Assembly (NCBI GenBank): GCA_002269645.1
Contig: NIVC01004495.1
Span: 1-44,139 of the forward strand
From: Macrostomum lignano
Lineage: Eukaryota
Reading direction: 5' to 3'
Length of the DNA stretch: 44,139 bases
The notes beneath the pieces were generated by a model. That model made no database searches. It was given only the letters and a program-made list of their open reading frames with translations, and was not told the DNA's origin. Positions 19,530-44,115 of the stretch are shown here, piece after piece. The translations under genes were made by a program, and so were the position numbers. The first letter of the stretch is position 1. Each line of letters opens with the position of its first letter.

Positions 19530-22500
19530 TCAGTATCCGGGCATATCGAGCGGGTCCCTCTGCAGCCTGACCACCCAGAACAGCTCGATCAGCAGGATGA
19601 CACCGCCGCACAGGTAGAGCGACAGACTGACGATGTAGGCGCCACCCACACCCTCCAGCGGGATGGCTGCGGCCTCAGCGGCGGCCGTGTTGACGTTGCA
19701 ATCGCTTGTCGAAGGAATGAACTTGCGAGTCACCACATCGACAAAGCCGCTCTCCTTGCCGCGCTGCAGTCTGTAGGGTTCGAGTTTTTGGCGTGACTTT
19801 ACATGTTCTGGTTCAAGGTTCGGTTGTGGCACTTAGTTCTGTGGTGGTTCAAGGTTCGGGTGTGGCACTTAGTTCTGTGGTGGTTCAAGGTTCGGGTGTG
19901 GCACTTAGTTCTGTGGTGGTTCAAGGTTCGGTTGTGACACTTAGTTCTGTGGTGGTTCAAGGTTCGGGTGTGGAATATCGTTCTGTGGTTCGAGGTTCGG
20001 TTGTGGAATGTCGTTCTGTGGTTCGAAGGTTGGTTGTCGCTTGCAAGTATTTGAAGCCAAAAAATCGTAAAATTAATGCACAGCCGAGTAAGTTTTTTTC
20101 ATATGGCACTATACATGTAATAAAGCCAAGAAGCTATAACCAAAGTCTAGCGGAGATGGCTTCAATGCAATTTAACAGCTGGAGGTAGCTATATCCAAGA
20201 AAATTAAAATATATTGAAAGAGCATGAAACTTACAGAAAGTCAAATGCTGGAAGGTAGTAGACATCCTGTGGAAAAGTCATAGCCAAGTAGTAAAAGTTG
20301 AAGAAATTTTTGGCTTGGTAAACCTGCTTGCAGAATGCGCTGGCGTAATAAGAATTGCTGCTCTGGTCTGAGACGCACACCAGGTACGGGCTCGCGTCCG
20401 GCTTGAGGAGCTGAGGGTAAGTTCGGTGAAGTGCTTTTTCAGATCCTAACTGAGAGCCTCAGGCTTTGTTGATTTCATCGAGTGTAAATAAATCTAAAAC
20501 CATGTCAGTCAGACTCACAGTCTCGGCGCAGGTGGCCATTGTGTCAACAAGCTCCATCTGTTTGCGTAGCATGGTCAAGGGACCTTCCGTCGCCAGCATG
20601 ATTGAGCCGTAGATGTTGGTGCCCTGGGCAACCATGGCCTTGTAGTGCGGCCTGGCGATCAGATCCTCCAAGCTCTCGATCGGGTACTTGGCCACCGTCA
20701 CAGCGAGCTTGGCCGTGAGGTCCCCTGAAGGAAAGGGATAGAAAACGCACTAACATTTGATCAACTGCAGATTTGATAGAACAGCCTAGCTTAACCACCT
20801 GTATATGCTCCAAAAATGACTACTGTGAGCATCCACCAGAACGCCATGACAGTTCGAGGACTCATCGAGAACGGGTAAAAGTCCTGGCCCTGCTGCAAGA
20901 AGCTGCCAATGACCGACCAGACGTATTCCTTTAGCCAGACTTCGTCAGAAAACGCATAAGGCAAGCCCAAAGTCCAGGCGCTAAAGGGACTGAGCTTGGC
21001 GAAAATGAAGATAACGACTGGAACAATGACGAACATGGCAATAATGAGCAGCCAAGAGTCCCAGGAGAGCGGCGTGAACACATTCCACAGCTTGGACTCT
21101 GGTGGAGGCATTTTCACTAGGATGGTGTTAGACGAGAACTGGTACTCATCCGAGTAGTCGACTACTTTATGGCGGAAAGTAGTAGTAGCGAACAGCATCG
21201 CGAAATCCGCTTGCTGAAAGACAGAAACAGATTCAGTCACTCAGTGTGTTGAATTCATTTGGAAGTACGCTCGTATGTTCACTGCGCTCACTCTTTTCTG
21301 CAGCATGCCGATGCAGCCAGTAAAGTAGGGTGAGCCCTCCACTGGTGCCCCGAACTGGTTATCCGGCGGAGAGAACAGGTCGTACCTTCAAATTGAGGCA
21401 TAAAAAATGAAGCATATTTTCATCTAGAGATGACTGATGAAAAATAATATGGCTTACGTAAAATTGAGGTGCCTGGTAAAGTAGCTAAGCATTTCGACCG
21501 AGTGTCCAGAAGCTCTGCCAAATGTGTAGTTCTCGTAGACCGTGTAAGGTGGAAACTGGATTGGTTCGTGCAGAGTATCAGCTTAGCATGCAGAAAAGAT
21601 AATTAAATCATGCCAGTTTTGCTTCAGTATATGAATTACTGTCATTTCCAGCGTTTCACTGTTTGTGCAACTGTATGAATCGAACACTACTTCATTAATC
21701 CAAGCACAATTTAAAACAAAATTAAGCTTCATCAGACAACCTCAGCATCTTCAGGGGGGTCGTAGCCCAGTGGGAGAGCGTTTGACTCACGACTGAAAGG
21801 TCGGGAATTCGATTCTCGACCCGCTCGAAACAAGTTGTCTTTGAGCATGAACAATAAAACATAACTCTGCATTGCTTCAGTTCACAAAGATGAAAAATGG
21901 GTACCAACATTAGCTGGGATAATTCAGGGTGAGTGGCGATTGAGAGTCCTTGGACTGAACAGCCGTACGCAGCATTAAGAGGCGCCGCGCAATAGCTGCC
22001 GCTGAGCTGTCGCTTGACCATTGGGGCATGGGTAATCAATTATTATTATTTAAGATCTGCACCAAAAGAGATATTTGATTGAAAGTAAATTCGAGAAACG
22101 CTCATGAGGCAAAAGTTACATATTTCGCTGAAAAGAAAGCCCTTACCGGCGGCGCGCAGACTCGCAGTCGAGCTCCCTTGAAGTCCACGAAGGTGTTGGG
22201 AAACAGCAGCTCGCGCTCCTTGTACTCGAAGGTCACTACAAGGCTGCCGTTCTCGACAATAAACCGGCCGCTTGGCACGAGTTCCGCGACTGCCTCCGGG
22301 TTGCTAAGCAGGCCCAGCATCTCCAGGAAGTAGTCGCTCCGGTGTCCCGCACTTCCATTGGCTGGGCTGAGCCGCTGCTATGAGGCATGCCAGGAAATAT
22401 GAGGTTAAGCATTAGTTACAGCCGTGGTTCCAGTACGCTTTGCTTTCTGTTCGCTGATTCAGCTATTAAGTATGCCGGTGTAAAGCAAACTCAACCACAA

Positions 22501-24042
22501 ATCGCACATGTCGCTAAGAATCTGAGTCAGACAGGCAACTGAACTCCAACCTGCTTCAGCTGCGCAGCCACTGCGGGACCCGCCGACCACGGCTGCAGCG
22601 GCCGACACGACGCGTTGCTGGCGGTCAGGCCGAGGTCGGAGCTGTCCAGTAGGCTCTGTGTAGCACTGGCGAATGACAGCACGGCCTCCACCGCCTTCAG
22701 CTCCAGCATCTGAGGGATGTTCAGGGTCTACTGCAGATAGATCGCCAGCGCCTAAGCTCCATCGCAGAAGAAGTTTGCAGGGAACGAGTTCCTCACCGAA
22801 CGCTTGCTGAACTGGCAGTCCGGATACACGACTCCGAGATCTACAGAGCAGTCCATTTCTTTGAGAAGAACTGCCGACTCACGGATCAAGAGGATGTTCG
22901 CAGACCCATTTGCGGGGATCAGAGTCTCGATAGTTCTTGGCGAAATTCCTGTGTCAATCACGGTCCAGAAGTAGTTGATCTGCAGTGTGGCTGTGTTCCG
23001 AGCCTGGAATGACAACCAAATGATATTAAGCCGAATCGATTGTGCGAAAGAATTTTTACCTGAGCTCACCTGCTCGAAGACGAGTGGGATCTTGTCGGGC
23101 TCGCAGACGACCACACAGTATCGAATCTGAGCCTTGACGCTGTTTTGCAGGATTTGTGTCAAATTGGTGGCCGACTCGTCGATCTGAAACATCATGCTGG
23201 CGATTCTCTTCTCCGAGAGCAGTTGCTGAAGCTGCTCAAGCAGCAAGTGGTCTGCAATGACGAGTGTTGGCCACCATGGTTGAGGAAGGCATTGCTGTCA
23301 ACTTACAGATGGAGCAGTAGTCTTGAGGAAGCCATGCGCACCCTGTTGTCTGTCGTGAAGGACAGCGACCAGATTAGCGGAGACTCGGTCCATTGCTTCT
23401 GCGGTCGCCCTCAAGAAGTCGGTCGCCGGAGGACTCGACACGATCGCTGAGTCTGTAAAGACATGCGATTCATTCTTGTCTGTGATGTAAGCAAGTGTGC
23501 GTCAGTAGATAGGTTGTGGTAATAAGGGTTTTACCTGGCACACTGGGTAGCCGACAAAGGCCTCTGAGAACTGCGACTGTCGGTAATTGTAGGGAGCCAG
23601 AGATTTTGAGCACATCCGAGACGAACTGACAAGAGCCGACGACGACCAAGCCGTTGAGACCTGTCGATCGACACACTGAAATTTCAGAAGAGATTTTCCG
23701 AGTGAGCAAGCAAGTCGTCGTTGAACCTAATCAGCTATTGATTGTCACCAAAGTACATAATTTTCTTTCTTAGAATTCTACAATACATTTGTATCGCAAG
23801 CTGTTTTTACCTCTCTGCGCAGCCTCCACTGAGTCCGCAGTCGGCAGCAGCTCCAGCGACATCGGACTGGTCTTGAATGCCGGATACCTCCAGTTTCCGT
23901 TGACCAGCTTGTCCACCGCTGTGGTGATGACCGAACTGTCCGCGAGACTTCCGGCTTCGCTCACAACAGCCAGGCGCACGGATGACCCGCTGCAGGCGTG
24001 CAGGGCCAGCAGGAGCAGCAGCGTTCGCAGCTCGTGCCACAT
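19530..24042 (-). CDS. IR-B: iGluR/IR-like subunit with ATD, 13 exons, ~830 aa, frame intact
   Basis: Same exon lengths and phases as IR-A. Exon 1 24042-23811; exon 7 ends 22147; exons 8-13: 21555-21458, 21385-21292, 21213-20799, 20724-20519, 20410-20235, 19770-19530. Confidence 0.92.
19805..20030. repeat. 36-bp minisatellite in intron 12 of IR-B, ~6 copies
   Basis: Unit gttctgtggtggttcaaggttcgggtgtggcactta. Confidence 0.9.
21754..22050 (+). mobile_element. tRNA-derived SINE, copy 3 (intron 7 of IR-B, antisense to host)
   Basis: Head gggggtcgtagcccagtgggagagcgtttgactcacgactgaaaggtcgggaattcgattc; same body and tail as the other two copies. Confidence 0.8.
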
Positions 24043-24214
24043 GACTGACTTAAAGATCGCGTGTGTGAGAGCCGCGAGCCGCTGCCGGAGTGGGACACTG
24101 GAGCTATTTATTGAGATCTTGCTGAACTGGAGCCGGTTTTTTGTATCAGATGTTTCCGATCGATCAGAGGCTGGTTATTCAACTGCAGTCTCATTAAGTA
24201 AAAATGGAAAGGTT
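22147..24214. repeat. Partner of block 7999-10079 (IR-B exons 1-7 plus upstream sequence)
   Basis: Near-identity starts at the last base of exon 7 and ends at ...aaaatggaaaggtt. Confidence 0.95.
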
Positions 24215-24896
24215 CTAACGAGATCAGGCGATTTTCAAGGCAGCATAAGATGGGATGTGTTCTGTACTACATCCTGATGTCTGTCTTTGCAGCCAGAAAG
24301 ATCTCACCTTTTTCGGATAACAAGCTTGAGTCGATTGGGTTTCCAGTTACAGCTATTTAGTCGCGGTGCTGTTGGTCCGGTGGCAAAACACCCGCGGTAG
24401 CAGGGGCTCAGGACTGCTGAGTTCCGCATCTCTATGAAATAGAATCTTCCGCAGGGCTTGGCAACCTTCAAATTGCCTGGCTTCACCTTCGATATCTTAT
24501 TTAATGAGGTTCGCTTCAGCGATCGGGTTTCTCATTGTCCACGCGGGACTTTTCCTTCATCAAACCTAAAGAACGCTGGTTTTTTTATTTTAGTAGTAAC
24601 ATCCAAGGTCACTATTGGTACGAAAGGGTATTTCCTGAAACAACCCCGTAAAAGCAAGAGCTCAAATTAAAGCTAAATTTGGCGCATCGAATGCAAACAG
24701 GGATGCTAGAAATTGGAAAAACTCTTTAAGTAGAAAATATTTTTAAGCTCACGCAGGCGAGACGCAAAGAAAGGGGCGACGGCGCCACGACTTTCGCCAA
24801 AATACTTGTAGTACAGTTATAAAAAGGTAAAAAAAGATTATCCTAGATCATGTGGCTTTTACTTTTTAAGTTTAATAACGTTTTAAGCATCATATA

Positions 24897-25500
24897 GCAC
24901 GCAGAGACAAGCACGCAGAGACAAGCACGCAGAGACAAGCACGCAGAGACAAGCACGCAGAGACAAGCACGCAGAGACAAGCACGCAGAGACAAGCACGC
25001 AGAGACAAGCACGCAGAGACAAGCACGCAGAGACAAGCACGCAGAGACAAGCACGCAGAGACAAGCACGCAGAGACAAGCACGCAGAGACAAGCACGCAG
25101 AGACAAGCACGCAGAGACAAGCACGCAGAGACAAGCACGCAGAGACAAGCACGCAGAGACAAGCACGCAGAGACAAGCACGCAGAGACAAGCACGCAGAG
25201 ACAAGCACGCAGAGACAAGCACGCAGAGACAAGCACGCAGAGACAAGCACGCAGAGACAAGCACGCAGAGACAAGCACGCAGAGACAAGCACGCAGAGAC
25301 AAGCACGCAGAGACAAGCACGCAGAGACAAGCACGCAGAGACAAGCACGCAGAGACAAGCACGCAGAGACAAGCACGCAGAGACAAGCACGCAGAGACAA
25401 GCACGCAGAGACAAGCACGCAGAGACAAGCACGCAGAGACAAGCACGCAGAGACAAGCACGCAGAGACAAGCACGCAGAGACAAGCACGCAGAGACAAGC
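24897..25500. repeat. 14-bp satellite (gcacgcagagacaa), ~43 apparently perfect copies
   Basis: Direct tandem repeat; I saw no variant unit. Confidence 0.97.
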
Positions 25501-26382: not shown

Positions 26383-29300
26383 TCAAAAACCCGGAAAATC
26401 CAGCGACTCCTTCTTCAACAGCAACACCCAGAGCAGCTCAATCAACAGGATGAGGCCGCCGCACACGTAGAGGCTCAGACTGACGATGTAGGCACCACCA
26501 ACGCCCTCCAGGGGGATGGCCGCAGCCTCAGCAGCTGCGCTGACGGCGGAGCCGCACTCGGCAGTCTGTGGGATGTACTTGCCAGTGATCATGCTCATGA
26601 CGCCGTTCGCTTTGCTTCTCTGAATCCTGAGAAGAATAGTTTGAAAGGAGACTTGGCAAAAAACGAATACGAATTATTGTAGAATTTACAGTACGAAGCA
26701 CTTGCAGATGCAGTCTCACTAGAAGGCAGAACTTCTGTTTCAGGCAAAACTGTCAATTTTATGGTACATAAAGTACGTTCAAATTTTTAAATGATACAAA
26801 TAATGATTTAAAAATTCGAGGTTTGAGGTTTAAAGTTTGCAAGAGACCTATTAATTTAGAGTAAAAGAATAATTGCAGTAATTTTCGAGTGCATGGGGAT
26901 ACTTGTTCACAACTCGCATCCACACATTACTGATCCCTCGTTCCCACTTACAGGAAGTCAAAGGCAGGCAGGTAGTATGCATCCTGTGGGAAGGCCATAG
27001 CCAGGTAATATGTGTTGAAGTAGTTCTCTGCGTTGTAGATCTCGCTGCAGAGCTCGTTAGCGTAGAACAAACTGATGCTGAGGTCCGATATGCACACCAG
27101 GTATGGGTCCGGCATCCTCACCAACTGAAGTTGGGTTGGTATATTTTGCAAATGTAGATCAGAAAAAATTGAGTACAAGTACCTTCCTTGCCTAAGTCTA
27201 ACTCTTAATCCTCATCAGTTATATGTAATTACATTGGTAGCGCAGGTGTCGAAGGAGTCAACCACCATCCATTGCTTGCGCAGTTGCAGCAGCGGCCCCT
27301 CTGTGGCGCTCAGCACAGCAGCGTAAATGTTGGTGCCTCTGGGCAGCATGGCCTTGTAGTGCGGTTTGGAGATGAGATCGTCCAAGCTCTGGATTGGGTA
27401 CTTGGCTACAGTCACTGCCAGCTTGGCCGTGAGGTCCCCTGAGCAGTGCCGAAGAGCGGTTCTTATGATCGCAAAAAACGCAAGTTACAAGCAATCAGAA
27501 ACAATAAAAAAATAGCTAAGCAAGTTCTATTATATTTTGCCTGAGTTTTGACTCGAGCAGTTAATCTACGCCATAAAACACACTTGCTTGTAAAAATTGT
27601 CAAACTCCGATTTTGAAAGTCTATAAAACATCTCAAAAGTGTAGAGACAGTGACCGGAAGGCCGACTCACCAGTGTAGGTAGCAAAAATGATAACGGTGA
27701 GCATCCACCAGAAAGCCAATACTGTCCGAGGGCTCATGGCAAACGGATAAAAGTCCTGGCCCTGCTGCAGGAAGCTGCCCACTGTCGACCAGATGTACTC
27801 CTTGAGCCAGACCTCGTCAGCAAAAGCGAAGGGCAAGTTCAAGTTCCAGCCAGTGAATGGACTCAGCCGAGCTAACCCGTAGATAAGGAGCGGTACGGCC
27901 AGGAACATGGCCACAATGAGAGTCCAGGAGTCCCAGGAGAGCGGCGCAAACACATTCCACAGCTTGGACTCGGCCATAGGCCTTTTCACCAGGATGGTGT
28001 TTGAGGAGAAAAGGAATTCTTCTGAATAGTCGATCACCTTCGATCGGATTGTCGTGATGGCGAATGGTGTGGCGAAGTCGGCCTCCTAAATGTGATTTGA
28101 GGAACATTTCAGAATGACAAGCTTGTCGAAATAATTGGTTAGTCTGGGCTACTCACGCCTTTCTGCACCATACCGATGCAGCCTGTAAAGTACGGAGAGC
28201 CAGGAGACGGGGCGCCAAACTGGTTGTCCGGTGGCGTAAAGATCGAGTAGCTGAAAAATTAATGTTTAACTCTCTAACTAAATTATTTGATGTCTAGACA
28301 AAAGCCCCAGCATTTATTTAAAGTAAATCAATCGTACGTGAAGTTGAGATGCTTCGAAAAGAACGCAGCCAAATCGGCTGTAATGCCAGAAGCATTGCCC
28401 ACTAACCCGCCGGAGTACATGGTGTAGGGCTTCGACTGAAAATGAAAAACTATTTTAGGACTAAAGAGATAACCGAAATTTTTCATTTCTTTGCTCTTCC
28501 ACCTACCGCGACAGCGCAAATCCGAATAGTCTTGTTCTTAAAGTCGATAAACGTGTTGGGGAAGATTAGGCTCCGACCTTTGTAGCGGAAGCTGACCTCT
28601 AAAGAGCCGTTCCCTACAAAGAAACGGCCGCTGTTGACGAACCGGACCGGGTCGGAGAACTCGTCGTGGAACGTCGCCTGCACCTCCAGAAAGTAGTCGC
28701 TGGGTGTCCAGCTGCTCCCAGCTGACAGCGGCTGTCGCAGCTACAAAGGTGAACGGTTTCGACTGAGCAGACTGAGAAAGAGGACATCATCCATGAGCAC
28801 CTGTTTCGGTACGATCCGTACCTGCTTCAGCTGCGCAGCCAGTGCGGGACCCGCCGACCACGGCTGCAACGGCCGACACGACGCGTTGCTGGCAGGAAGA
28901 CCGGAACTGTCCAGTAGGCTCTGCGTAGCGCTGGCGAACGACAGCACGGCCTCTACTGCCTTCATCTCCAGCATCTACAGTCATGATCAGAGTCTGGGGC
29001 TGGTGACAGCGCCTAGAATCTATTGCAGAAGTGTGTAAATAAAAGCTTACCGAGTATTTGCTCATTTGGCAGTCCGGAAACACGGCCTTGAGCTGTGAGG
29101 TGCAACCGGCTGAGGCCGTTTTCAAGTCTATGGGCGACTCTCGGATCACAAGAATGTTTGCAGACTCGTTTGTAGGGAGCAGGTCCTCGATGGACACAAG
29201 TCGAACTCCCGTGTCGATCACTGTCCAGAAGTAGTTGAGTTTCAGTGTGCCCGTGTTCCGAGCCTGTGTTGAGAAAGGCTCTAATGAATTAACATGCTCT

Positions 29301-30720
29301 TAGTGAATGCCAGGATAGGTATAAAGTGTGCCAAAAACAATTATGAATTCGCACCTCTCGTAAAACGGCGTCGACATTTTCAGGCGTGCACAGAACCAAT
29401 GTGTTGCGATAACGCTTCCAAACGACGTTTCTCAGTATGCTGGTCAGGTTGCTTGCTGAGTCATCGATTTGGAAAGTCAGGCTGGGGATGCTTTTATCCG
29501 ATAGCAATTGCTGCAGCTTCTCCAGAAGACGGTGATCTGCAATCAGATTAGAGAGCTTGTGAGACTCACACTGCAAAGCTGTACGTGCACCTTTGTGACT
29601 TACCTTGATACTTATCGTAAAAGACAACGACGGCCTTTTGCTCGAGCCGACTCACGATTGTCGCAGCAGCTTCCAGGAAACTTCCGACGTCCGGGTTCGA
29701 GATTAGAGTCACGGCTGCAAAATTGTGAGGAATGCAAACTCTTTAACTGACTGTTTCATGGAGCACATGTCATAAAGACAAAGATTGATAAATATCATTA
29801 CGATTGGTATTGTTGATGAAGCAGAGGTCGCGAAAGACAGCGACTGCCGGCACGCTGATTGAGGTGGAGACGGCCAGAACGTCGGTCACGAAGGCGCAGG
29901 AGCCCACGGCGACTACTCCGTGCAGGCCGGGTGTGTTGCACACTGGAATTTTTTTTTCAGTCTTCATAGAAAACTGCACCTATGCAAATTTTGTTTGCCT
30001 GTGGCTTGGTGACAGTGACAGATTTATTGACCATACTCGTACGTTGCTAGACATGCTACTTGTAGTGTGACAAATCGTTTTGCTCGGTTTGGATTATGTT
30101 TTAAACTGGCATTTATGGAAGTGTCTAGACTTATGTGCCTTGAATTACGCTTGTAGCTAATCTGTCTGTATTGTTAAGTTTTAAATCGAAAAAGAATGTG
30201 TTGAAGATATAAAACCGAGGCAGGTGCAAAACAACTGGTAGTGTAGTGCATCTTGGTTTCTAATGTGTATCGAAATCTGACTCTCCTCAGGAGTCTCTGA
30301 CTTTAAAGCGGAAATGATATTAGCAATATTCTGATGGCCTAGTTTAATCGCTCAGTAAATATTTAGATTTGTAGATTTGAGCGATTAAGGAGATAAGCTA
30401 CAAGGTTATCTCCTTATCCGAGCGACAGAACCACAACGCCTCATCTGAAAAGCTTATTAGTAATAAGACCAACCAGTTCGCATAGCCTCGACAGCATCGC
30501 TGGCCTGAACAAAGACGTGCGTCATGGGGTTTGTCTTGAATGCCGTCAGCTTCCAGTAGTTGTTGATGAGCAGGTCGATGGCTCGGCCCACGGCCAAGTC
30601 TCCAATGCTGCCGTTCTGAGCGACCACCGCCAGTTTGACGGCTCCTGCGCAGGTGGACAGCGCGAGGAGAGCGCAGAGCGGCGCGGCGACAGCTCGGAAG
30701 CTGGCGTGCCAAGCGGTCAT
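26383..30720 (-). CDS. IR-C: iGluR/IR-like subunit with ATD, 13 exons, ~836 aa, frame intact
   Basis: Exons 30720-30474, 29942-29802, 29714-29604, 29536-29355, 29263-29051, 28974-28822, 28740-28507, 28435-28338, 28250-28157, 28085-27671, 27438-27233, 27124-26952, 26626-26383. The sum is 2511 nt, in frame. Confidence 0.92.
28517..29951. repeat. ~1.43-kb block (IR-C exons 2-7 with introns) nearly identical to 38240-39674 of IR-D
   Basis: Direct comparison. Exon 1 (30474-30689 vs 39817-40040) is also nearly identical, but intron 1 is unrelated. Confidence 0.93.
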
Positions 30721-31589
30721 CTCACTGGCTGGACTGAAGGACGGGGGACTCTGTAGCCGGAAAACAAAACTTGGTCAGCCTCCCCCGCAAAATCCTCTCG
30801 CTTAAATATGCGCCAATGTTTATCCGTGATTGGCGAAGCTGTGGCCGGTTGAGTCAAGCGTTTGTGATAATTCCAAATTTGATTGCTTCTTATTTGCGAG
30901 AATCAAAATGACCCGATTATCGGATTGGTGCAAGCTTACATTGATTCGTCACTTAGACTTTGCTAAGCCCCATAGAACCTGAGCTGTCAGTCAATATTCC
31001 CTGTCTCGAAGTCACATCGCTTCGCAACGCCGAGCTGCTGGGCTCAGCTTTTCTATTGAATTCAGCAGGTCATTAGCGCCGCTGCTCCGTCTATGGATCA
31101 ATAATCTGCTCACAGCTCACCTTCATATCTGATTTCCGTGAAGATAATGAGGCTTCGAGAGTTGAATAGCAATCGAAGAAGACTTCCGATGGATAGTTAT
31201 TGATCTCCCACAGCCCTAGCCCGTTTTTTATGATGAGGTACTTGTTTGCTTTACTCAATCAGTTATAAAAGTTTTCTGACTCTACCTCCAGCTTTCTAAT
31301 GGCCGGAAGTCAATATTTTCTCAGCTTTCCCTTCGCACGTCAATAAAGCTCGGTTATAAATAAATCTATCCATTCTTTGGCTAGATTGTGCTTCATTGCT
31401 CATCTGTGGCTGTTTTTGCTTTTAAAGTTGAGAATAATTCTTATTGAAGCCGGATTTCTACCTAGGTTTACTTTAATTACAGGTTAATTACAGATTTTTG
31501 ATGCACCCTTTTCGATTCAATTAGTCACATCAGCGTTTGCGACTAACTTCGTCAAGCCATTCATTTAAACCGCATTGTCGGCTGATTTT

Positions 31590-33260
31590 CCATGCAAGAA
31601 TGGCATTCTTGCACTCTTTTGCGTGCAAGAATGGATGTCTATGGTAAAATCTCACTGAAAAAGCATTAGGCGCAGAAATGCATTCCTGCACGGTTTTGTG
31701 CATTCCTGCACGATGAATCATCCGACAATGGAATTCCTTCACGTTCACTCGTGCGTGAAGGACATCGTGCACTCGTGCGCTAGCGCGCACTCGTGCAGAT
31801 GTCATTCCCGCACTCGTGACCGTGCAGGAATATAGCATTCTTATTTGATTCTGCGTGCAGGATTGCTGATCTGGCACGCCCAAGCGTGCAGAATTGATGT
31901 TGTCTATGGCAAATTATCCTTTAGGTCTAATGCATCTTACGTGCAGGATTGCAATTTATTTTTAGACAACAAGAAAACAACGAGTGAAAATTGGTTAATA
32001 TCATTACTATTTTTTCGCTTGCGATCAGATGCTACTCAAATACAAATTCAATGACGTTGGTGTCACCATTGGCTCGAATCTTCAAATTCTTCCGATTTTC
32101 CGGAATAACTCGCACACAGCGCACCGAGCCCGACGTAGGATCATTGATAACGTCAACTAGGTCACTTGCCTCAGTGCCTACAACTTGAGGGTCGGCCGTA
32201 GTAGCCACCTCCACGGCAGCCGTTAGTTGATGGCTCATAGCACAGATCGCTTGCTCTCGTTTATTCCCTCGTCGAATGTAGCGCTCGACGGATGCACCTC
32301 GCTTGTGGCCAGTCACTTTAGCGATAGTTTCGACATTAAATCCAGCGTCGTGAAGTTCTGTGATTACAGTTGCACGCACACAATGCGCAGTGTATGGCTT
32401 GGACAATCCGGCGGACGTAGAAATTTTCTTCATCAGAGGCCCAAGGGTGTTGACTCCTACTGCACTCTTGCTGTACGAGCTCGTACCACTTACCAGATGA
32501 ACGAAAGTTAGCGTTTGGTCGCAGAAAGAAGTCCACTCCGTTCCATCCTTCAACTTCGGTGACCTTTTGCTTGTACAGTCTGAACGCCTCAACTGGGCAT
32601 TTGGCAGAATCTCCCTTTGACACCATCAACGCTTGCTTGTTGTCAACCATGACGGCGACGCTGGTAGAACCATGTAGATTCTTTGAATCTCCCTGAACAA
32701 GCTCAATCGCGTAGAGTCCATTGGCGAGCCGCTTCTCACAAAACCGATCAAACCTCAAACCACGCAACCATTCACGGCCTCTATTCCCATAGTAATAAAT
32801 GACGTTAAAGTATACTTCCTCTTGAAGACGCACCGGATTCGACCGATCGAAGTATTTACCGAGCTTCTTCAGGTCGTCACTCTCAATAGCATCGTAGTGC
32901 TTCACTCTTCCTCCAGATCGAAGGAAAGCGTTGCAAATGTTTTTATAGTGGCAACTAGCTTTCAATTGTAATCTCCTTTCGTTACCCCCTCCCCTCTTCA
33001 TCTCCAGCGTGCAAGATTGATTTTGTCTATGGTTAAAATGTGGGGGCTTCGCCCCCACGCCCCCAGCGGGGCTCTGCCCCCGCACCCCCGCTAGCAGCGG
33101 GTAATGTCTATAGTAATATCAATTATAACCTCCTTTTTTGGGCAGAATTTAAAATGGAAGAATCAAATAAGAATGAGATTCATGCACGCCAACTCGTGCG
33201 TCTATGGCAAAGAGCACTCGTGCGCTTCGCGCACTCGTGCTTTTGCCAATGACGCACTCG
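31590..33260 (-). mobile_element. Crypton-like tyrosine-recombinase (YR) DNA transposon; boundaries approximate
   Basis: YR ORF bracketed by clusters of cactcgtg and tgtctatgg motifs; no long terminal inverted repeats seen. Confidence 0.7.
32032..33001 (-). pseudogene. Tyrosine recombinase (Crypton/DUF3504-type), frameshifted by a 10-bp insertion at ~32477-32486; ~319 aa if repaired
   Basis: Overlapping ORFs 32336-33085 and 32032-32592 give EDLKKL-like DDLKKL, YGNRGRE (R), DSKN (K), CPVEAFRLY, YTAHCVRAT (HxxR), VTGHK (H) and SVERY (Y). Confidence 0.85.
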
Positions 33261-33524
33261 TTAGCGTTCAAGAATCCTAACAGTGTGAGCCACACTTGGG
33301 TTCAAATATAATAACCCCCCCCCCCAGATTTGCTGTCTATGGCGTAAAGAATGGCTGAGGATGCGTTTCTAGGCCGAGGCGAACAAGCCAAAGAAACAAA
33401 TCTGGGGGTGTAACTTCAAATGGGGCTTTTGGGGGAAACAAAATAGGCTTCTCTATGGGCAAACCAATGTGAGAAATGAAGAGACTAGAAATGGATTTCG
33501 GCAAAACTGCCTTAACTTTCGCCT

Positions 33525-33920
33525 ATGACTCATGTGCTATCTAAGGAACTATTCATGGCTCATGTGCTATCTAAGGAACTATTCATGGCTCATGTGCTAT
33601 CTAAGGAACTATCCATGGCTCATGTGCTATCTAAGGAACTATTCATGGCTCATGTGCTATCTAAGGAACTATCCATGGCTCATGTGCTATCTAAGGAACT
33701 ATTCATGGCTCATGTGCTATCTAAGGAACTATTCATGGCTCATGTGCTATCTAAGGAACTATTCATGGCTCATGTGCTATCTAAGGAACTATTCATGGCT
33801 CATGTGCTATCTAAGGAACTATTCATGGCTCATGTGCTATCTAAGGAACTATTCATGGCTCATGTGCTATCTAAGGAACTATCCATGGCTCATGTGCTAT
33901 CTAAGGAACTATTCATGGCT
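33525..33920. repeat. 30-bp minisatellite (atggctcatgtgctatctaaggaactattc), ~13 copies
   Basis: Direct tandem repeat. Confidence 0.95.
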
Positions 33921-34813
33921 ACTGCTGCTGAAATTAAACGCAGTGCCCCTTTTTAGTGGCACACGATCTTATTCCATGTATTAGTATGTTCGATCAATGG
34001 ACAAAATCAAACGCTAAAGTGGCGAATTCAATAGCAAAAAGGTATAATAGTGCGCATCCATTCTGCCCTGCAGTCTGTGTTTTTAATCTTGACTTGTTCA
34101 GCAGCTTCTTTTGCTAACGAAATTTCTTGATTTGTTTCGTCATGGTGTGGCTAAGAATTCTGCCTGGTAAATGAAGGCCAAAAGAAATACCATTAAAAAG
34201 TTATTTTTGCGATGCGCCAATTAATTTAGATACATTGAACAAAAGCGAAATCGTTTGACAATGAAAATTTTCTTGGATGGACTTCAGTGAGTGCTGAGCG
34301 GTTCGTTCAATGGTCAAAATTCTTCTCTGGGGGATTAACCTAAAAAATCTAAATCGAAGAAGAAAACGCTTCTGCTTTATAATTATTAGGAGTTCGCATC
34401 GCAAACAAAGAACTATTTTTAACATTTGAGTCATAGGCTGTTGTTTTTCAACACAGCTTCAAAGTAGCTAAGTCCAACGCAGTTGTAGAAAACTTATTGC
34501 GCTTTCAATGGAGACCAAGTATTCAAGAATCGGTTGCGCCTTTTCGATTTTGTTAAAGCTTGAGAGAAATGCTAAATTTGTTATATTTGTCAGCTTGGCA
34601 TTTTTAAAGCAAATTCAGACAAAACTGAATGGCTTGGATTGGCCCGGTTGCTCGAACAATTCAAGTATAAGCAAGGTACTGTAGACGGCTCATTCCTCCC
34701 CAGCAGAGCACGAAGGAGAGATTACAGCAGCTTGGGGACAGAATCTAACGGCCTACAGTTTAGAATTAAAACTTTGATTTATTGTCAAATTTGTCCTCCA
34801 GAAAATTTACCGT

Positions 34814-35452
34814 TTGCCTCAAGCACTCAAACACTCGGCTACCTGATGCAGGGTTGCCTCAAGCACTCAAACACTCGGCTACCTGATGCAGGGTTGCCTC
34901 AAGCACTCAAACACTCGGTTACCGGATGCAGGGTTGCCTCAAGCACTCAAACACTCGGTTAACGGATGCAGGGTTGCCTCAAGCACTCAAACACTCGGCT
35001 ACCTGATGCAGGGTTGCCTCAAGCACTCAAACACTCGGTTAACGGATGCAGGGTTGCCTCAAGCACTCAAACACTCGGCTACCTGATGCAGGGTTGCCTC
35101 AAGCACTCAAACACTCAGTTACCTGATGCAGGGTTGCCTCAAGCACTCAAACACTCGGTTACCTGATGCAGGGTTGCCTCAAGCACTCAAACACTCGGTT
35201 ACCTGATGCAGGGTTGCCTCAAGCACTCAAACGCTCGGTTACCTGATGAAGGGTTGCCTCAAGCACTCAAACACTCGGTTACCGGATGCAGGGTTGCCTC
35301 AAGCACTCAAACACTCGGTTGCCGGATGCAGGGTTGCCTCAAGCACTCAAACACTCGGTTACCTGATGCAGGGTTGCCTCAAGCACTCAAACACTCGGTT
35401 ACCTGATGCAGGGTTGCCTCAAGCACTCAAACACTCGGTTACCTGATGCAGG
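34814..35452. repeat. 40-bp minisatellite (acctgatgcagggttgcctcaagcactcaaacactcggtt), ~16 copies
   Basis: Direct tandem repeat with few variants. Confidence 0.95.
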
Positions 35453-35479
35453 ACAGTTATCGCAAGAAGGATCATCTTG

Positions 35480-35750
35480 CTACGCCCCTTACACATAGGA
35501 GAGTCTCCAGCGCTTCTGGTGTGGTCGGCGCAAGATGCAGCCAAATGCCGATATGCCAGCCCGGGTCTCTGGCCGACATCAGCTCAGGACAGTTAGCGTC
35601 GTGAGCGCACGCCCATGGTATACCGTAACAGCCTGTGCGAACGCATCCAGAGCTTGCTGTCGAGTATCGGCTATAAAGACAGCCTTCATGCCATACCGGT
35701 AAAGCAGTACCAGCTCTGCTGCAGCATGGAGAATGCGCAGCCGCCGCATC
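35480..35750 (-). mobile_element. Decayed RTE-like LINE RT C-terminal fragment
   Basis: Minus frame IKMRRLRILHAAAELVLLYRYGMK...RQQALDAF resembles the RTE motif KLRIFRA.VESVLLYG.E.W......LD.F, with stops. Confidence 0.5.
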
Positions 35751-36177
35751 TTTATCTCTCAGTGCATGTTTCAAATTTGAGACTTCATGCCTGACCATTC
35801 TATAATTAATCAATGCACCAATCGAATGCTTGAATCCGATTGAAACCTTACACTGCTGAGAAACCACGCTTTGGACGGACGTTTACTTGGGAACTTTAAA
35901 ATCAATTACCAATTATCAATTAGCAGATGTTGATTGCCAAATGTTCGTAAACATCGGTCTTGGTAGCAACGAAAACTTGCGATGACCCTCACTTGATGTA
36001 TTTGATGTAGAAAGCTACGGGGCGTGGGATAAAATAGCATATCGCACCCGTCATCAAGTCAGACCGGATTTTGCTATCAAATAAAAAGAGCTCAGCAAAT
36101 TCATTGATATTTCGGTAGGAGTAGTTTGGTAGGAGCATCGTTGCAGTTCAACTGAGTATTTTACTCGTATTTTTTAA

Positions 36178-36311
36178 AACTGAGTCACTTGCTCCAATGT
36201 CAGCAACTGAGTCACTTGCTCCAATGTCAGCAACTGAGTCACTTGCTCCAATGTCAGCAACTGAGTCACTTGCTCCAATGTCAGCAACTGAGTCACTTGC
36301 TCCAATGTCAG
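36178..36311. repeat. 27-bp minisatellite (aactgagtcacttgctccaatgtcagc), ~5 copies, just downstream of the IR-D stop
   Basis: Direct tandem repeat. Confidence 0.93.
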
Positions 36312-36354
36312 ACAGCTGCAAAAGTCTTCAAGACAACAAGTACCATGGTCGAGT

Positions 36355-39300
36355 TTAAAAACCCGGAAAATCCAGCGGCTCGTTCCTTAGTTTGAACACC
36401 CAGAAAAGCTCCACGAGCAGGATGACGCCGCCGCACACGTAGAATGCTAGACTGACGATGTAGGCACCGCCAACGCCCTCCAGGGGGATGGCCGCAGCCT
36501 CAGCAGCCGCGCTGACGGCGGAGCCGCACTCGGCAGTCTGGGGATGTACTTGCCAGTGATCATGCTCATGACGCCGTTCGCTTTGCTTCTCTGAATCCTA
36601 AAAGAAAAAAAAACTGCTCCATTCAGAACTGTTTGAGAGTAAAAACATTTCAAAAATTCTCTTCCTAAAATTCCATCCATCATGCATTCGCTGACAACCT
36701 GAGACTAAACTACAGAACTTCTGAGCTCCAAGCCGTCAGCCATTCAGGCCAACTCACAGGAAGTCAACCGCGGGCAGGTAGTAAGCGTCCTGAGGGAAGG
36801 CCATGGCCATAAAGTACGGGTTGAAGTAGTTGTCGGCGTTGTAGATGTCTTCGCACAGCTCGTTGGCGTAGTGCAGACTAACAATCAGATCCGAAATGCA
36901 CACCAGGTATGGGTCCTTGATGGTCACCAGCTGCGCGATTCGAGGAATACGAAGACTATTTTTAAAATTGGATTCGCATTTTCGCAAGCAAACACTCTTT
37001 GTTCAAATTTGAAAAACGCTACGCTGAATTGACGCATCAAATCCAAAACTACAAGCCAAAGCAATCATCGCTGGACTTACATTCGTAGCGCAGGTGTCGA
37101 AGGAGTCAACTAACTCCCACTGATCCCTAAGCTTGGCAAGCGGCCCCTCTGTGGCGCTCAGCACAGCAGCGTAGATGTTGGTGCCTCTGGGCAGCATGGC
37201 CTTGTAGTGCGGCTTGGAGATGAGATCGTCCAAGCTCTGGATTGGGTACTTGGCCACAGTCACTGCCAGCTTGGCCGTGAGGTCACCTGCAAATGAGAGT
37301 CCCTGTATTGCTGCATGGTTTCATGCATTGCTGACAAGTCACAGACGCACCAAACTTACCAGTGTACGAAGCGAATATGATAACCGTCAACATCCACCAG
37401 AAAGCCATCACCACTCGAGGACTCATGGCAAAGGGATAAAAGTCCTGACCCTGCTGCATGAAGCTGCCAATCGCTGACCAAATGTAATCCTTCAGCCAGA
37501 CCTCGTCAGCAAAGGCGAAGCTGAGTTGAAGGTTCCAGCCAGTGAATGAGCTGCTGCTAGCCAACCCGTAGATGAGAAGCGGCACTACCAAAAACATGCT
37601 CACAATTAGAGTCCAGGAATCCCAGTAGAGCGGCGCAAACACATTCCACAGCTTGGACTCGGCCATGGGTCTTTTCACCAGAATGGTGTTGGAGGAGAAA
37701 ATAAACTCTTCTGAATAGTCAATCACCTGCGACCGGATCAACGTGGTGGCAAAGGGCGTAGCAAAGTCGGCCTCCTGCAATTCGTCCGCGGACCGTTTCC
37801 AGCTTAATGTAGTCTCTATTCAGCATATTTATTTCTCGCAAAAGGAAAAAACAAGGGCACTCACTCCCTTCTGAACCATTCCGATACAGCCTGTGTAGAA
37901 GAGCGAGCCAGGGACTGGAGCCCCAAACTGGTTGTCTGGGGGCGTAAAAATCGTGTAACTGAAAGTAAAAAAGTGTTTCCGATTAAAATAAAAATTTGAG
38001 ATTCAGCTGTTCGACTTAAATAACATCAACATCTCTTAAATCGGCATTACCTAAAATTCAGATGTTTTGAAAAGAAAGCTGCCAGATCAGCAGTGATACC
38101 CGAGGCAACGCCAAAAGTTCCGTTTGAGTACTCAGTTTGTGGTTTCGTCTAAAATGCGAAACAATGCGAAACAAATGCGAAACAAAGAGGACACGACAGT
38201 TGGTTTACTAACAAGAAAAATCAACGAACCGCAACAGAACAAATCCGAATAGTCTTGTTCTTAAAGTCGATAAACGTGTTGGGGAAGATGAGGCTCCGAC
38301 CTCTGTAGCGGAAGCTGACCTCTAAAGAGCCGTTCCCTACAAAGAAACGGCCGCTGTTGACGAACCGGACCGGGTCGGAGAACTCGTCGTGGAACGTCGC
38401 CTGCACCTCCAGAAAGTAGTCGCTGGGTGTCCAGCTGCTCCCAGCTGACAGCGGCTGTCGCAGCTACAAAGGTGAACGGTTTCGACTGAGCAGACTGAGA
38501 CAGACGACATCATCCATGAGCACCTGCTCCGGTACGATCCGTACCTGCTTCAGCTGCGCAGCTAGTGCGGGACCCGCCGACCACGGCTGCAACGGCCGAC
38601 ACGACGCGTTGCTGGCAGGAAGACCGGAACTGTCCAGTAGGCTCTGCGTAGCGCTGGCGAACGACAGCACGGCCTCTACTGCCTTCATCTCCAGCATCTA
38701 CAGTCATGATCAGAGTCTGGGGCTGGTGACAGCGCCTAGAATCTATTGCAGAAGTGTGTAAATAAAGGCTTACCGAGTATTTTCTCATTTGGCAGTCCGG
38801 AAACACGGCCTTGAGCTGTGAGGTGCAACCGGCTGAGGCCGTTTTCAAGTCTATGGGCGACTCTCGGATCACAAGAATGTTTGCAGACTCGTTTGTAGGG
38901 AGCAGGTCCTCGATGGACACAAGTCGAACTCCCGTGTCGATCACTGTCCAGAAGTAGTTGAGTTTCAGTGTGCCCGTGTTCCGAGCCTGTGTTGAGAAAG
39001 GCTCTAATGAATTAACATGCTCTTAGTGAATGCCAGGATAGGTATAAAGTGTGCCAAAAACAATTATGAATTCGCACCTCTCGTAAAACGGCGTTGACAT
39101 TTTCAGGCGTGCACAGAACCAATGTGTTTCGATAACGCTTCCAAACGACGTTTCTCAGTATGCTGGTCAGGTTGCTTGCTGAGTCATCGATTTGGAAAGT
39201 CAGGCTGGGGATGCTTTTATCCGATAGCAGTTGCTGCAGCTTCTCCAGAAGACGGTGATCTGCAATCAGATTAGAGAGCTTGTGAGACTCACACTGCAAA

Positions 39301-40063
39301 GCTGTACGTGCACCTTTGAGACTTACCTTGATACTTATCGTAAAAGACAACGATGGCCTTTTGCTCGAGCCGACTCACGATTGTCGCAGCAGCTTCCAGG
39401 AAAGTTCCGACGTCCGGGTTCGAGATTAGAGTCACGGCTGCAAAATTGTGAGGAATGCAAACTCTTTAACTGACTGTTTCATGGAGCACATGCCATAAAG
39501 ACAGAGTTTAATAAATATAAATACGATTGGTATTGTTGATGAAGCAGAGATCGCGAAAGACAGCGACGGCCGGCACGCTGATTGAGGTGGAGACGGCCAG
39601 AACGTCGGTCACGAAGGCGCAGGAGCCCACGGCGACTACTCCGTGCAGGCCGGGTGTGTTGCACACTGGAATTTTACGGACATGAAAAAATCATTTGTAC
39701 CTAAACCTAAAATTCGGCTACCTTCCGTAAAAATTGGGGTTGAAATGGTTCGCTCCGTGGCTCAAAATTATACTGCATTAACTGGCGATGCAGTGAGTAT
39801 ACCAGCGCACGCGTACCAGCTCGCATAGCCTCGACAGCATCGCTGGCCTGAACAAAGACGTGCGTCATGGGGTTTGTCTTGAATGCCGTCAGCTTCCAGT
39901 AGTTGTTGATGAGCAGGTCGATGGCTCGGCTCACGGCCAAGTCTCCAATGCTGCCGTTCTGAGAGACCACCGCCAGTTTGACGGCTCCTGCGCAGGTGGA
40001 CAGCGCGAGGAGAGCGCAGAGCGGCGCGGCGACAGCTCGGTCAGAAGCTTTAGTATCAGGCAT
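36355..40063 (-). CDS. IR-D: iGluR/IR-like subunit with ATD, 13 exons; apparent 1-bp deletion in exon 13 at ~36540
   Basis: Same exon plan as IR-C. Exon 13 reads YIP|QTAEC only if one base is restored (IR-C ctgtgggatg vs IR-D ctggggatg); it then ends in EPLDFPGF*. Confidence 0.88.
38240..39674. repeat. Partner of block 28517-29951
   Basis: Direct comparison. Confidence 0.93.
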
Positions 40064-41434: not shown

Positions 41435-44115
41435 TCAAAATCCTGGAAAATCCAGCGTTTCCTTCTTCATGAGGATCACCCAGAGCAGCTCCACCAGCAG
41501 GATGAGGAAGCCGCACACGTACAGCCCCAAGCTGAGGATGTAGGCGCCTCCCACGCCCTCCAGCGGGATGGCCGCCGCCTCGGCAGCCGCTGTGGCGCCC
41601 GTGCCGCAGTCTGAGGTCAGTGGAATGTACTTGCTGTTGATCAGGTCGACCACGCCCGCAGCTTTGCCACGCTGAATGCTGCAATTGGCAGGCAAATGCT
41701 GCCTTTACGCTTTCGTACCCAGAATAATAAGTATGAGTTATTATAAAAAGATAAGATAATATTAATAAAGAGTTATTAAAAAGTCTGTATGATTATTGAA
41801 TCAAAAGTTTCTTAGTTTCATTAGCGAAATTTTAATTTGCCTTTAATTGGTATTTAGGGCTAAACTAAAATATAACGGTGAAATATAACGATGACACCTG
41901 GCTTTATTTCCCAGAGATCTAATTGTTTTGCTAATTTTTTACGTTTTCTTAATGACGTTCTTTCGTCTTAACGTCGTAACATTGTAGCTCGTAGGCCAAA
42001 AATTATACGCATAGATTTACGAAAAGAACCTAAAATAACAATAAGAAGTTTTCGAATTTAAATATAGTACCATTAGTCACTTAAAGACAATACCAAATAT
42101 TAACTAGAAGTATTCGATTCAAGCAGAAAAAATTTCTAGCTGTTAATACATGCAAATGCATCCCACGTGTTACTGCAACATCTAAGTTTAGTCAGTTTTA
42201 ATAGTTTAGTTTTTGGATAATAACTTACAGCTGCTTTTCATAAAATTTTTGAAATTTGAATAAAGTTAAATTTGTTTTACTGATGTGCGTGAACCACAAA
42301 TTATAAGTACAAGCTACTTGAAAGCACCATTTGCCAATCCAAGAGTTCATTTTGCCTTTCGTTTCAGATTTTCGTTTTGAGACTAATATAAACGCATTAA
42401 AGAGCATCGCAAAGCGTCAGAATGAAGTTTTACTTACAAAAAGTTGAATGCATCGATATAATATGAGTCCTTTGGAAAGGCGATTGCAATGTAGTACGGA
42501 TTGAAGTAGTTGTAAACATTGTACACGTACTGGCAGTACCGGCTGGCGTACAGAAGGTTCACGTTCACGTCAGAGATGCACACCAGGTAAGGATCCGTGC
42601 TGGTAATCAGCTGAAAGAATTGAAAGCAGTTTGATTGCAGCTTAAGCTTGTGTAATGAACTGTGGTTTGGTGCAAATGCGCTTGTACAGCTGGCGCTAGT
42701 AGCTCACACTCATGGCGCAGGTGTCAAAGGACTGCGTCAGCACTTTCATCTGCCGCAGCTTGACCAGCGGTCCCTCTGTGGCGGCCATCATCGAAGAGTA
42801 GATGTTGGTCCCGAGCGGCACCATGGCCTTGTACTGCGGCAGGGACACCAGCTGTTCCAGGCTTTCGATTGGGTACTTGGAAACCGTCACGGCCAGTTTT
42901 GAGGTCAAATCGCCTTCATCGGGACGGATATAGGAGTTTATAGCGGCATTAAAAAACAAACTGTGCTCATGTTTCTATACGAGCTACAAAGCGTTTGCCT
43001 CAAAAAGGCTTTTCGAACACTTACTGTAGGCAGCGCCTACTATCGTGTGTGTTGGGGCGGTTGTTAGCGGCTGCGCCGCGTGATTCTGCTAGCTCTCCCC
43101 TATGCGTACAATATCAAATGTGCATGGTGCGACTTTAGCTTGACTCAGCTCAATTACTCAATAAATATACTGATCGCAATTCTTCTCGCCTGCAAGCTTT
43201 CGGCAACTATCGACGACAACGACAACAACAACAACAAAAACAAACTACAGCAACCCTGTAGTTCGCGAAAATGCGCACGCAAGCGCAGATTTGCGCAGAA
43301 TAACGAGTCCTATACAACAAGCAGTCTAGTCTCGTTTCACTCACTACACTTACCTGTATAGGTGCCAAAAATGATCACAGTGAGCATCCACCAGAACGCC
43401 AAAACAGTCCGGGGGCTCATGGCGAATGGATAGAAATCCTGGCCCTGCTGCATGAAGCTGCCTATGGCGGACCAGATGTACTCCTTCAGCCAGACCTCGT
43501 CCGCAAACGCGAATCGCAGACCAAGGTTCCAGGCGGAGAACGGGCTGAGCCTGGCAAACAGAAAGATGACACCCGGCACCAACAGGAGCATGCAGACTAT
43601 CAGCAGCCACGTGTCCAGGCAAGCGGCGTAAACACATTCCACAGCTTGGACTCGGAATTCGGCCGCTTGACCAAGATGGCATTCGATGAGAACATGTACT
43701 CCTGAGAGTAGTCGATCACCTTGGATCGAAATGTGTTAATAGCCATGGGAATGGTGATGTCTGCTTCCTGCAAATCAGAGCAAAGCAGGGGTACCCTCTT
43801 CGAAGCCAGTATTTTTTCAAAACATTCTGATTAAAAAGTGAATATTTCTTACGCCTCTTTGAATCATGCCAATGCAGCCCGTGTAATAGACCGAGGCCGG
43901 GTCTGGCGCTCCGAACTGATTGTCCGCAGGAGCGAACAGCGAGTAGCTGCGAGGGTGTGGACAGGAAATTCTTGGGAACTTACTATTTCAGCCCATTTGT
44001 GTATTTCAGGTAACTTACGAATAGTTCAGATGCAGTGAGAGAAAGTGAATGATGTCGGTGGAAATTGCACCAGGAATGCCAACCGTTCCGTTTGAGTACT
44101 GCATGTACGGCCGCG
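41435..44115 (-). CDS. IR-E: 3' part (exons 8-13) of a fifth iGluR/IR-like gene; ATD exons lie beyond the window; apparent 1-bp deletion at ~43615
   Basis: SRPYMQYSNGTVG..HLNYS, YSLFAPADNQFGAP..GCIGMIQRG, EADITIPMAINTFRSKVIDYS, SFMQQG, TYTGDLTSKLAV, LVCISD, LEGVGGAYI, ETLDFPGF*. PLAW|DTW needs one extra G. Confidence 0.88.

Follow-up and report, generated by a model that had tools for sequence, protein, structure and literature searches.

Homogenised front halves and a shared exon 7 boundary in two gene pairs of a glutamate receptor-like array of Macrostomum lignano

How can neighbouring receptor genes be nearly identical up to the end of exon 7, several introns included, and differ throughout the remaining exons, and why is this boundary found at the same place in two separate pairs of genes? 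The question is raised by a stretch of 44,139 nucleotides (nt) of the flatworm Macrostomum lignano (contig NIVC01004495.1 of assembly GCA_002269645.1, positions 1 to 44,139, forward strand), in the following called the window. It carries a tandem array of genes related to the ionotropic glutamate receptors (iGluRs), and four of these form the pairs A/B and C/D. The genomic sequence indicates that both are probably old sister pairs which arose by tandem duplication and whose 5' parts were recently overwritten by interlocus gene conversion. A first-pass annotation had read the pattern as a constant amino-terminal domain (ATD) combined with a variable ligand-binding domain (LBD).

Two gene pairs with homogenised front halves

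Self-BLAST of the window revealed five tandem iGluR-like genes, here named A to E, which were all located on the minus strand. Exon models were based on open frames, GT-AG splice sites and conservation between the paralogs. The genes of the array have 13 exons in common, with conserved phases, nearly equal lengths and GT-AG sites, and A, B and C are intact. The numbering of the exons was built independently of the first-pass annotation, and what is called exon 7 there is exon 7 in our models as well. The gene models are as follows (E, exon; aa, amino acids).

5635-9908, minus strand: gene A, 13 exons, 829 aa, ATG at 9908
19530-24042, minus strand: gene B, 13 exons, 829 aa
26383-30720, minus strand: gene C, 13 exons, 833 aa, intact, from open reading frame (ORF) segments and GT-AG sites
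Gene C, minus strand: E1 30720-30474, E2 29942-29802, E3 29714-29604, E4 29536-29355, E5 29263-29051
Gene C, minus strand: E6 28974-28822, E7 28731-28507, E8 28435-28338, E9 28250-28157
Gene C, minus strand: E10 28085-27671, E11 27438-27233, E12 27124-26952, E13 26626-26383
36355-40063, minus strand: gene D, 13-exon structure transferred from C; phases and exon lengths agree with those of C
Gene D, minus strand: E1 40063-39817, E2 39665-39525, E3 39437-39327, E4 39259-39078, E5 38986-38774
Gene D, minus strand: E6 38697-38545, E7 38454-38230, E8 38148-38051, E9 37958-37865
Gene D, minus strand: E10 37774-37360, E11 37286-37081, E12 36930-36758, E13 36597-36355
41435-44116, minus strand: gene E, exons 8-13 only; the gene, including its ATD, continues past the end of the window

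Identity between the paralogs was mapped by self-BLAST, a MAFFT sliding window and base-level alignments. This defined the following tracts, together with the zones that separate or border them.

7996-10079, minus strand: tract of A; begins 171 nt before the ATG (9908) and extends to position +3 of the exon 7 donor, exon 7 ending at 7999
22144-24214, minus strand: tract of B, homogenised with the copy in A; exon 7 ends at 22147
28517-29952, minus strand: main tract of C; starts 10 nt upstream of exon 2, takes in introns 2-6 and stops 10 nt short of the exon 7 end
38240-39675, minus strand: main tract of D, same extent as in C
30472-30697, minus strand: exon 1 tract of C, starting at codon 9 and ending 2 nt beyond the donor of exon 1
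39815-40040, minus strand: exon 1 tract of D, counterpart of the one in C
29943-30473, minus strand: intron 1 of C, 531 nt, not homogenised
39666-39816, minus strand: intron 1 of D, 151 nt, not homogenised
28436-28516, minus strand: breakpoint zone of C, with the last 10 nt of exon 7, the donor GT (28506-28505) and intron 7 (71 nt)
38149-38239, minus strand: breakpoint zone of D, with the last 10 nt of exon 7, the donor GT (38229-38228) and intron 7 (81 nt)
26383-28435, minus strand: exons 8-13 of C, the old diverged half with the remainder of S1, M1-M3, S2 and M4
36355-38148, minus strand: exons 8-13 of D, likewise the old diverged half

The tract of A and B was 97.2% identical, with about 44 substitutions and three indels in 2085 columns, and its identity ended 3 nt past the exon 7 donor. 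In C and D the main tract was collinear (C 29952-28517 versus D 39675-38240) and differed at 23 of 1436 positions (1.6%) without any indel. Introns 2-6 were 93-100% identical, and within the tract divergence amounted to 1.1% in exons and 2.9% in introns. Here three substitutions fall into the final 10 nt of exon 7, which ends at 28507 in C and 38230 in D, and the identity ceases ahead of them, 10 nt short of the donor. The breakpoint is thus the same in both pairs, as the first-pass annotation had stated, since the A/B tract and the main C/D tract both end within 10 nt of this donor. Across the pairs the divergence of the tracts was 1.3-2.1%. The differences between C and D were clustered, six of them falling into 40 nt (p = 0.004), which suggests more than one event or a mosaic tract.

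Exon 1 of C and D was homogenised as well (three differences in 226 nt; proportion of synonymous differences, pS, 0.06). The introns 1 that follow have only their last 10 nt (AAAATTCCAG) in common. As they are otherwise unrelated, exon 1 appears to have been converted separately from exons 2-7. Both the near-identity of the C/D blocks and the homogenisation of exon 1 without its intron were already described in the first-pass annotation and are borne out. An insertion, deletion or transposable element does not account for the mismatch, because the 151 nt of D are absent from the 531 nt of C. Neither intron 1 recurs elsewhere in the window. Intron 7 of D holds a short GTTTCGCATT repeat.

Beyond exon 7 the picture was different. 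Introns 7-12 of C and D could not be aligned, and the exons 8 to 13 were 65, 79, 83, 90, 79 and 91% identical, respectively, compared with 72-83% for exons 8-13 of A and B. Against such exons, and next to introns and flanks that resist alignment, the near-identity of the front halves greatly exceeds what chance would give. Synonymous divergence (dS; Nei-Gojobori estimates here and below) was 0.038 (C/D) and 0.035 (A/B) in exons 1-7 and 0.64 (C/D) and 0.98 (A/B) in exons 8-13. This contrast, together with introns that are nearly identical from 2 to 6 and unalignable from 7 to 12, is that of regional concerted evolution. Purifying selection alone was rejected as its cause: introns and synonymous sites are nearly identical too, which argues for homogenisation at the level of DNA and not for constraint on the protein.

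The back half is under purifying selection, with a ratio of nonsynonymous to synonymous divergence (dN/dS) of 0.16 in C/D (dN 0.10) and 0.17 in A/B, and gave no sign of diversifying selection. Its least conserved part in all six gene pairs was the 98-nt exon 8, with 54-72% nucleotide identity (65% and 72% within the pairs, 54-58% between the classes A/B and C/D). Exon 8 also carried the highest proportion of nonsynonymous differences of the back half (0.18-0.42), and its pS in C/D reached 0.87. Together with intron 7, intron 8, exon 9 and intron 9 it forms a block of low identity of about 420 nt in C/D. Exon 11 of the same pair was 90% identical with a pS of 0.23.

At the protein level the ATDs were 97-98% identical within pairs and 54-56% between them, while the back halves were 72% (A/B) and 85% (C/D) identical within and 63-66% between pairs. 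The tree of the back halves was ((A,B),(E,(C,D))), placing gene E with C and D, and the tree of the ATDs gave the same pairing. This agreement points to two independent exchanges between adjacent sister paralogs, and it supports the earlier view of a second, separate event in C/D. Between the classes the protein is most diverged in the ATD, with a dN of 0.40 versus 0.24-0.27. The statement that the ATDs of C/D and A/B are only distantly similar is therefore roughly correct for the protein and does not apply to exon 6, which is described next.

Shorter patches of unexpected identity were found at two further places.

26537-26636, minus strand: exon 13 patch of C, start of exon 13 with 10 nt of the acceptor; counterpart in D 36509-36606
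C 26952-26961 and D 36758-36767, minus strand: the part of the 99-nt run that lies in exon 12
A 8416-8574, B 22551-22709, C 28822-28974 and D 38545-38697, minus strand: exon 6

In the spliced alignment of C and D a perfect run of 99 nt spans the exon 12/13 junction, including the last 10 nt of exon 12. Permutation of the 3' half of this pair (2000 permutations, GENECONV-type) yielded a maximum of 68 nt (p <= 0.0005); the main tracts are evident even without such statistics. The sliding identity of the exon 13 patch, which encodes the linker between S2 and M4, was 97-98%. From its sequence the run is best described as a separate short conversion patch within the supposedly variable half. Exon 6 was 86-88% identical at the nucleotide level between the classes with a pS of 0.25, compared with 0.54-0.84 in the other ATD exons. 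Intron 5 was partly alignable between the classes, and B has two residues of exon 6 (V and S) in common with C and D that are missing from A. Exon 6 looks like the trace of an older conversion between the two classes. Taken together, both patches suggest that exon-limited conversion was active across the array.

Two of the genes carry a frameshift as assembled.

About 36541, minus strand: 1-bp deletion in exon 13 of D; C reads ATCCCACAGACT, D reads ATCCCCAGACT
After 43615, minus strand: 1-bp deletion in a G run of exon 10 of E, GCCTGGGAC to GCCTGGAC

The deletion in D falls within the exon 13 patch, which is 97-99% identical, and shifts the frame just ahead of M4. The one in E is located at the conserved PLAWD motif and shifts the frame in M1. 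Both may be consensus errors or may mark young pseudogenes. The long-term dN/dS of 0.16 indicates that D was functional for most of its history.

The receptor family and the other contents of the window

Search of gene C against Pfam identified ANF_receptor, Lig_chan-Glu_bd (60.7 bits, residues 416-524) and Lig_chan (79.5 bits, residues 538-802). The latter two were likewise found in A. ANF_receptor scored 27.0 bits in C (cut-off 25.4) and, with 19.7 bits, remained below the cut-off in A. With phmmer, residues 69-819 of C aligned over the full length, ATD included, to GluD1, GluK1/2 and GluA1-4 (E ~1e-38). The bipartite S1/S2 ligand-binding domain flanking the channel domain, which characterises the iGluR superfamily, is therefore present, and so is an LIVBP-like ATD, as judged by sequence matches (Pfam in C and phmmer).

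The Arg of S1 (TIRSK) and the Asp of S2 (CISD) align with the corresponding R and D of GluD1. Assignment of the S2 Thr (RGTN) was ambiguous, and the position equivalent to T480 of GluA2, read from the alignment by eye, is apparently Ala. The QQG of the pore loop is kept (GSFLQQGQDFYPF). To our knowledge SYTANLAAF is a near-universal gating motif of iGluRs. In its place all five genes carry TYTGDLTAKLAV, which according to the phmmer alignment is partly conserved.

27671-27690 and 27420-27438, minus strand: M3 of gene C, which reads TYTGDLTAKLAV

These features identify A to E, as far as sequence comparison goes, as divergent full-length subunits of the iGluR type. The first-pass annotation had labelled the genes as ionotropic receptors (IRs). 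We regard this label as unjustified, since the genes have kept the ATD and, at the ligand site, both Arg and Asp; variant IRs are recognised by the loss of the ATD, from which co-receptors are exempt, and/or of the glutamate-binding residues, which does not describe these genes. The best match among arthropod IRs, an IR21a-like protein, was only 20% identical. An exhaustive search with exon 10 yielded no more than 10 cluster representatives at E <= 1e-30, and those with a named source were, where looked up, all from M. lignano. The next relatives beyond them were monogenean and cestode proteins with about 40% identity. By these matches the array belongs to a flatworm clade that is expanded in M. 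lignano.

The exons of gene A were 100% identical to the UniProt entry A0A1I8JJF5 of M. lignano. This database model is a fusion, however: its N-terminal extension of 345 residues maps to the opposite strand at 12906-14108, and it uses wrong frames in exons 4 and 7. For gene E the best match in the protein collection searched was 51% identical, and no E protein was present there.

Apart from the receptor genes, the window contains the following features.

2756-3484, plus strand: ORF of 242 aa with a Claudin_2 / PMP-22 match (35.8 bits)
12906-14108, plus strand: ORF of 400 aa with a hydrophobic N-terminus and no Pfam match
32032-33085, minus strand: two overlapping ORFs between C and D; Phage_integrase (31.6 bits) and a weak DUF3504 match
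6666-6960 (intron 10 of A), 16071-16299 (A-B spacer) and 21755-22048 (intron 7 of B): dispersed repeat of about 250 nt, copies 72-79% identical
3521-3992, 17450-17962, 19809-20022, 24896-25500, 33525-33920, 34814-35452 and 36178-36311: seven minisatellite arrays

The ORFs at 32032-33085 look like the remnant of a tyrosine-recombinase (Crypton-like) transposon. The dispersed repeat explains much of the extra length of intron 7 in B (591 versus 213 nt). The minisatellites have periods of 14-43 nt and lie in spacers and in intron 12 of B. One of them consists of 43 perfect copies of AGCACGCAGAGACA, and a 22-nt minisatellite (3521-3992) directly follows the Claudin_2 ORF.

Origin of the shared boundary

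All C/D tract ends that could be mapped lie at exon edges: 2 nt past the donor of exon 1, 10 nt ahead of the acceptors of exons 2 and 13, and 10 nt short of the donor of exon 7. Conversion between sister copies could produce this arrangement if it starts and resolves only where the copies still pair. Introns under no constraint would have diverged beyond recognition, so that tracts would end at the edges of exons. Where a long tract had its anchors in exons 2 and 7, the short introns 2-6 lying in between would be copied along. Exon 1 of C/D would have been converted alone, its intron 1 acting as a heterology of 151/531 nt that splits the tracts. That conversion stopped at the exon 7 donor in A/B as well as in C/D would then reflect the nature of the next stretch, which is the least similar of the 3' half.

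As no other exon of the 3' half is as diverged as exon 8 in any comparison, a homology barrier alone predicts the shared breakpoint. If the ends of tracts are tied to exon edges, two pairs hit the same intron by chance in about one of 12 cases (p ~0.08), and more often if exon 8 is a barrier throughout the family. Recurrence is then weak evidence for selection on a constant ATD. The argument of the first-pass annotation that it speaks for selection loses most of its force, given this expectation, the divergence of exon 8 and the dN/dS of 0.16-0.17 in the back half. The island of exon 8 itself was kept either by selection on the S1 segment, in a balance of the type proposed by Innan, or by historical drift, and two pairs cannot decide between them. 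Selection on exon 8 possibly reinforced the limitation of conversion at the exon edges.

Several observations weigh against recent conversion between old sister genes as the explanation. Intron 7 of C and D is short (71/81 nt) and does not exceed in length the introns 2-6, through which the tract runs. The length of heterology alone therefore cannot explain the stop, and exon 8 must have been too diverged to pair. The converted half had no excess of GC at third codon positions (GC3; 0.69-0.73 in exons 1-7 versus 0.68-0.78 in exons 8-13), and GC3 and intron GC, examined as a signature of biased conversion, gave no clear difference. Raised GC3 is typical of repeated conversion and is not needed for a recent event. 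Nothing here indicates long-running biased conversion, and one or a few recent events fit equally well. Furthermore, the sample consists of two pairs. Two loci on other contigs (NIVC01000845.1 and NIVC01001700.1), examined in the search for further arrays, each carry a single gene of the family. The protein predictions P0012 and P0003 were considered as evidence from other arrays and set aside as uninformative, being fused or chimeric. Judged from the window alone, an alternative is that the duplicates are young and that donors located outside the window overwrote their 3' halves.

The explanation that survives best among the others, if still an unlikely one, is adaptive. It holds that the ATD is kept identical within each pair by selection for co-assembly of A+B and of C+D as two classes, that selection diversified the LBD and that the breakpoint is a functional boundary. 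The ATD drives the subfamily-specific assembly of AMPA, kainate and NMDA receptors, which was reportedly established by Leuschner & Hoch in 1999 and Ayalon & Stern-Bach in 2001. In line with this idea, two independent pairs share the breakpoint, the classes truly differ (the between-class dN of the ATD given above), and divergence peaks at exon 8, within S1, as the conversion-selection model of Innan predicts (PMC3966226). However, the introns were homogenised along with the exons, so that selection on the protein is not needed, and the half that should be variable has a low dN/dS. Conversion also affected exon 13 of C/D and, between the classes, exon 6. D and E are frameshifted as assembled, and, with tract ends bound to exon edges, the coincidence of the breakpoints has the chance probability of about one in 12 stated above.

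The position of the breakpoint does not favour a functional boundary either. Exon 7 ends at residue 424 of C and the Pfam match to the LBD starts at 416; in the alignment with GluD1 the exon 7/8 junction falls inside the first beta-strand of S1. The junction thus lies 8-9 residues within the LBD instead of at the ATD/LBD border, and the shared module comprises the ATD, the linker and the first strand of S1. A constant ATD with a variable LBD is accordingly an apt description insofar as the front half is shared and the back half diverged. It falls short in that the linker and the first S1 strand belong to the shared part and that exons 13 and 6 carry patches of their own. It is a reasonable hypothesis, though not one required by the sequence, that pair members with identical ATDs can replace each other in the ATD layer and that classes of co-assembly are defined in this way.

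Chimeric duplication is improbable in our judgement. In this case unequal crossing-over or template switching in intron 7 would recently have duplicated the 5' half alone, or young duplicates of whole genes would have had their 3' halves replaced by paralogs from outside the window. The edges of the A/B tract are indeed sharp, 171 nt before the ATG and at the donor, as in a block duplication, and a GC3 signature of repeated conversion is missing. Yet if A and B had undergone unequal crossing-over, a third gene should remain that has its 3' half in common with another, and in the window this holds for no two genes. C/D would need two separate tracts because of the unrelated intron 1, the 3' halves of each pair are still mutual closest relatives, and the clustered differences within the tract suggest several events.

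An assembly artefact is very improbable as the cause of the pattern. It would mean that copies were misjoined, collapsed or over-polished in a genome rich in repeats and recent duplications. In its favour, the genome of M. lignano is highly repetitive, minisatellites abound in the window and two genes have single-base deletions typical of long-read consensus errors. Against it, the copies show 1.3-2.1% divergence, including fixed diagnostic substitutions, all exons of each gene occur in order with valid splice sites and unique flanks, the pattern is seen twice with different sequences and different behaviour of intron 1, and polishing cannot turn unalignable introns identical. Four diagnostic residues of C/D (S/T, V/I, D/N and S/R) also separate the M. 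lignano UniProt fragments P0009 and P0010. This is supporting evidence and not independent proof, as these models may stem from the same assembly.

Comparison with known systems and significance

Gene conversion between old sister paralogs, our preferred explanation, has well-known counterparts. In the protocadherin clusters of zebrafish and of fugu, there Pcdh2, the 3' part of the variable exons is >99% identical within a sub-cluster while EC1-EC3 are diverged (PMC1852091, where Noonan et al. 2004 is cited for conversion of teleost protocadherins). As in the present array, one part of the coding region of tandem paralogs is homogenised, synonymous sites included, up to a sharp domain boundary; the domains that determine specificity stay diverged and each sub-cluster is homogenised to its own version. 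The protocadherin tract, however, lies in one large variable exon of many paralogs and has raised GC3, whereas here seven exons with introns are affected in pairs only, without GC3 excess. Moreover, the homogenised part is N-terminal in our genes and consists of C-terminal ectodomains in protocadherins.

A second parallel are the Rhesus genes RHCE and RHD, where a peak of divergence at an exposed exon has been ascribed to selection opposing conversion (PMC3966226). Here too neighbours are homogenised and divergence peaks at the exon for an exposed specificity surface, in the array exon 8. In RH, though, the gene is mostly similar around a small island, whereas in the array the entire 3' half is old.

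With the AMPA, kainate and delta receptors (GluD1, GluK1-2, GluA1-4) the array genes share the order of ATD, S1, M1, QQG pore loop, M3, S2 and M4. They differ by their great distance (136 bits over ~750 residues), by the gating motif TYTGDLTAKLAV and by their restriction to a flatworm clade. The variant IRs of protostomes belong to the same superfamily and typically form tandem arrays of chemoreceptor-like paralogs. In most of them the ATD is absent and at least one of the residues Arg, Thr and Asp that bind the ligand has been lost, whereas the array genes keep the ATD and at least Arg and Asp.

In the literature we found no paper on iGluR arrays of M. lignano or on ATD-restricted conversion in iGluR or IR genes. 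The array adds a further gene family and phylum to the known cases of a mechanism that is ordinary and not new in itself. What is uncommon is a tract across seven exons with their introns and the coincidence of tract ends with splice junctions. The clean recurrence in two sister pairs, within a compact array, could make it a test case for how heterology and selection set the boundaries of conversion, and likewise for the role of ATD identity in the co-assembly of iGluRs.

For studies of this flatworm receptor family there are practical consequences. Phylogenies and orthology calls that use the ATD half will mislead. The UniProt models of these genes are fragmentary or fused, and the models presented here are useful for annotation. 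As a side effect of the homogenisation, the two members of a pair combine different LBD/channel bodies with an ATD, a linker and a first S1 strand that are almost the same. One could imagine a modular system in which conversion is favoured because it maintains one ATD handle per pair for mixed tetramers and in which selection on exon 8 blocks its spread. From the sequence we hold this to be rather improbable. If true, receptors would be diversified combinatorially by a genetic mechanism, in analogy to constant and variable regions.

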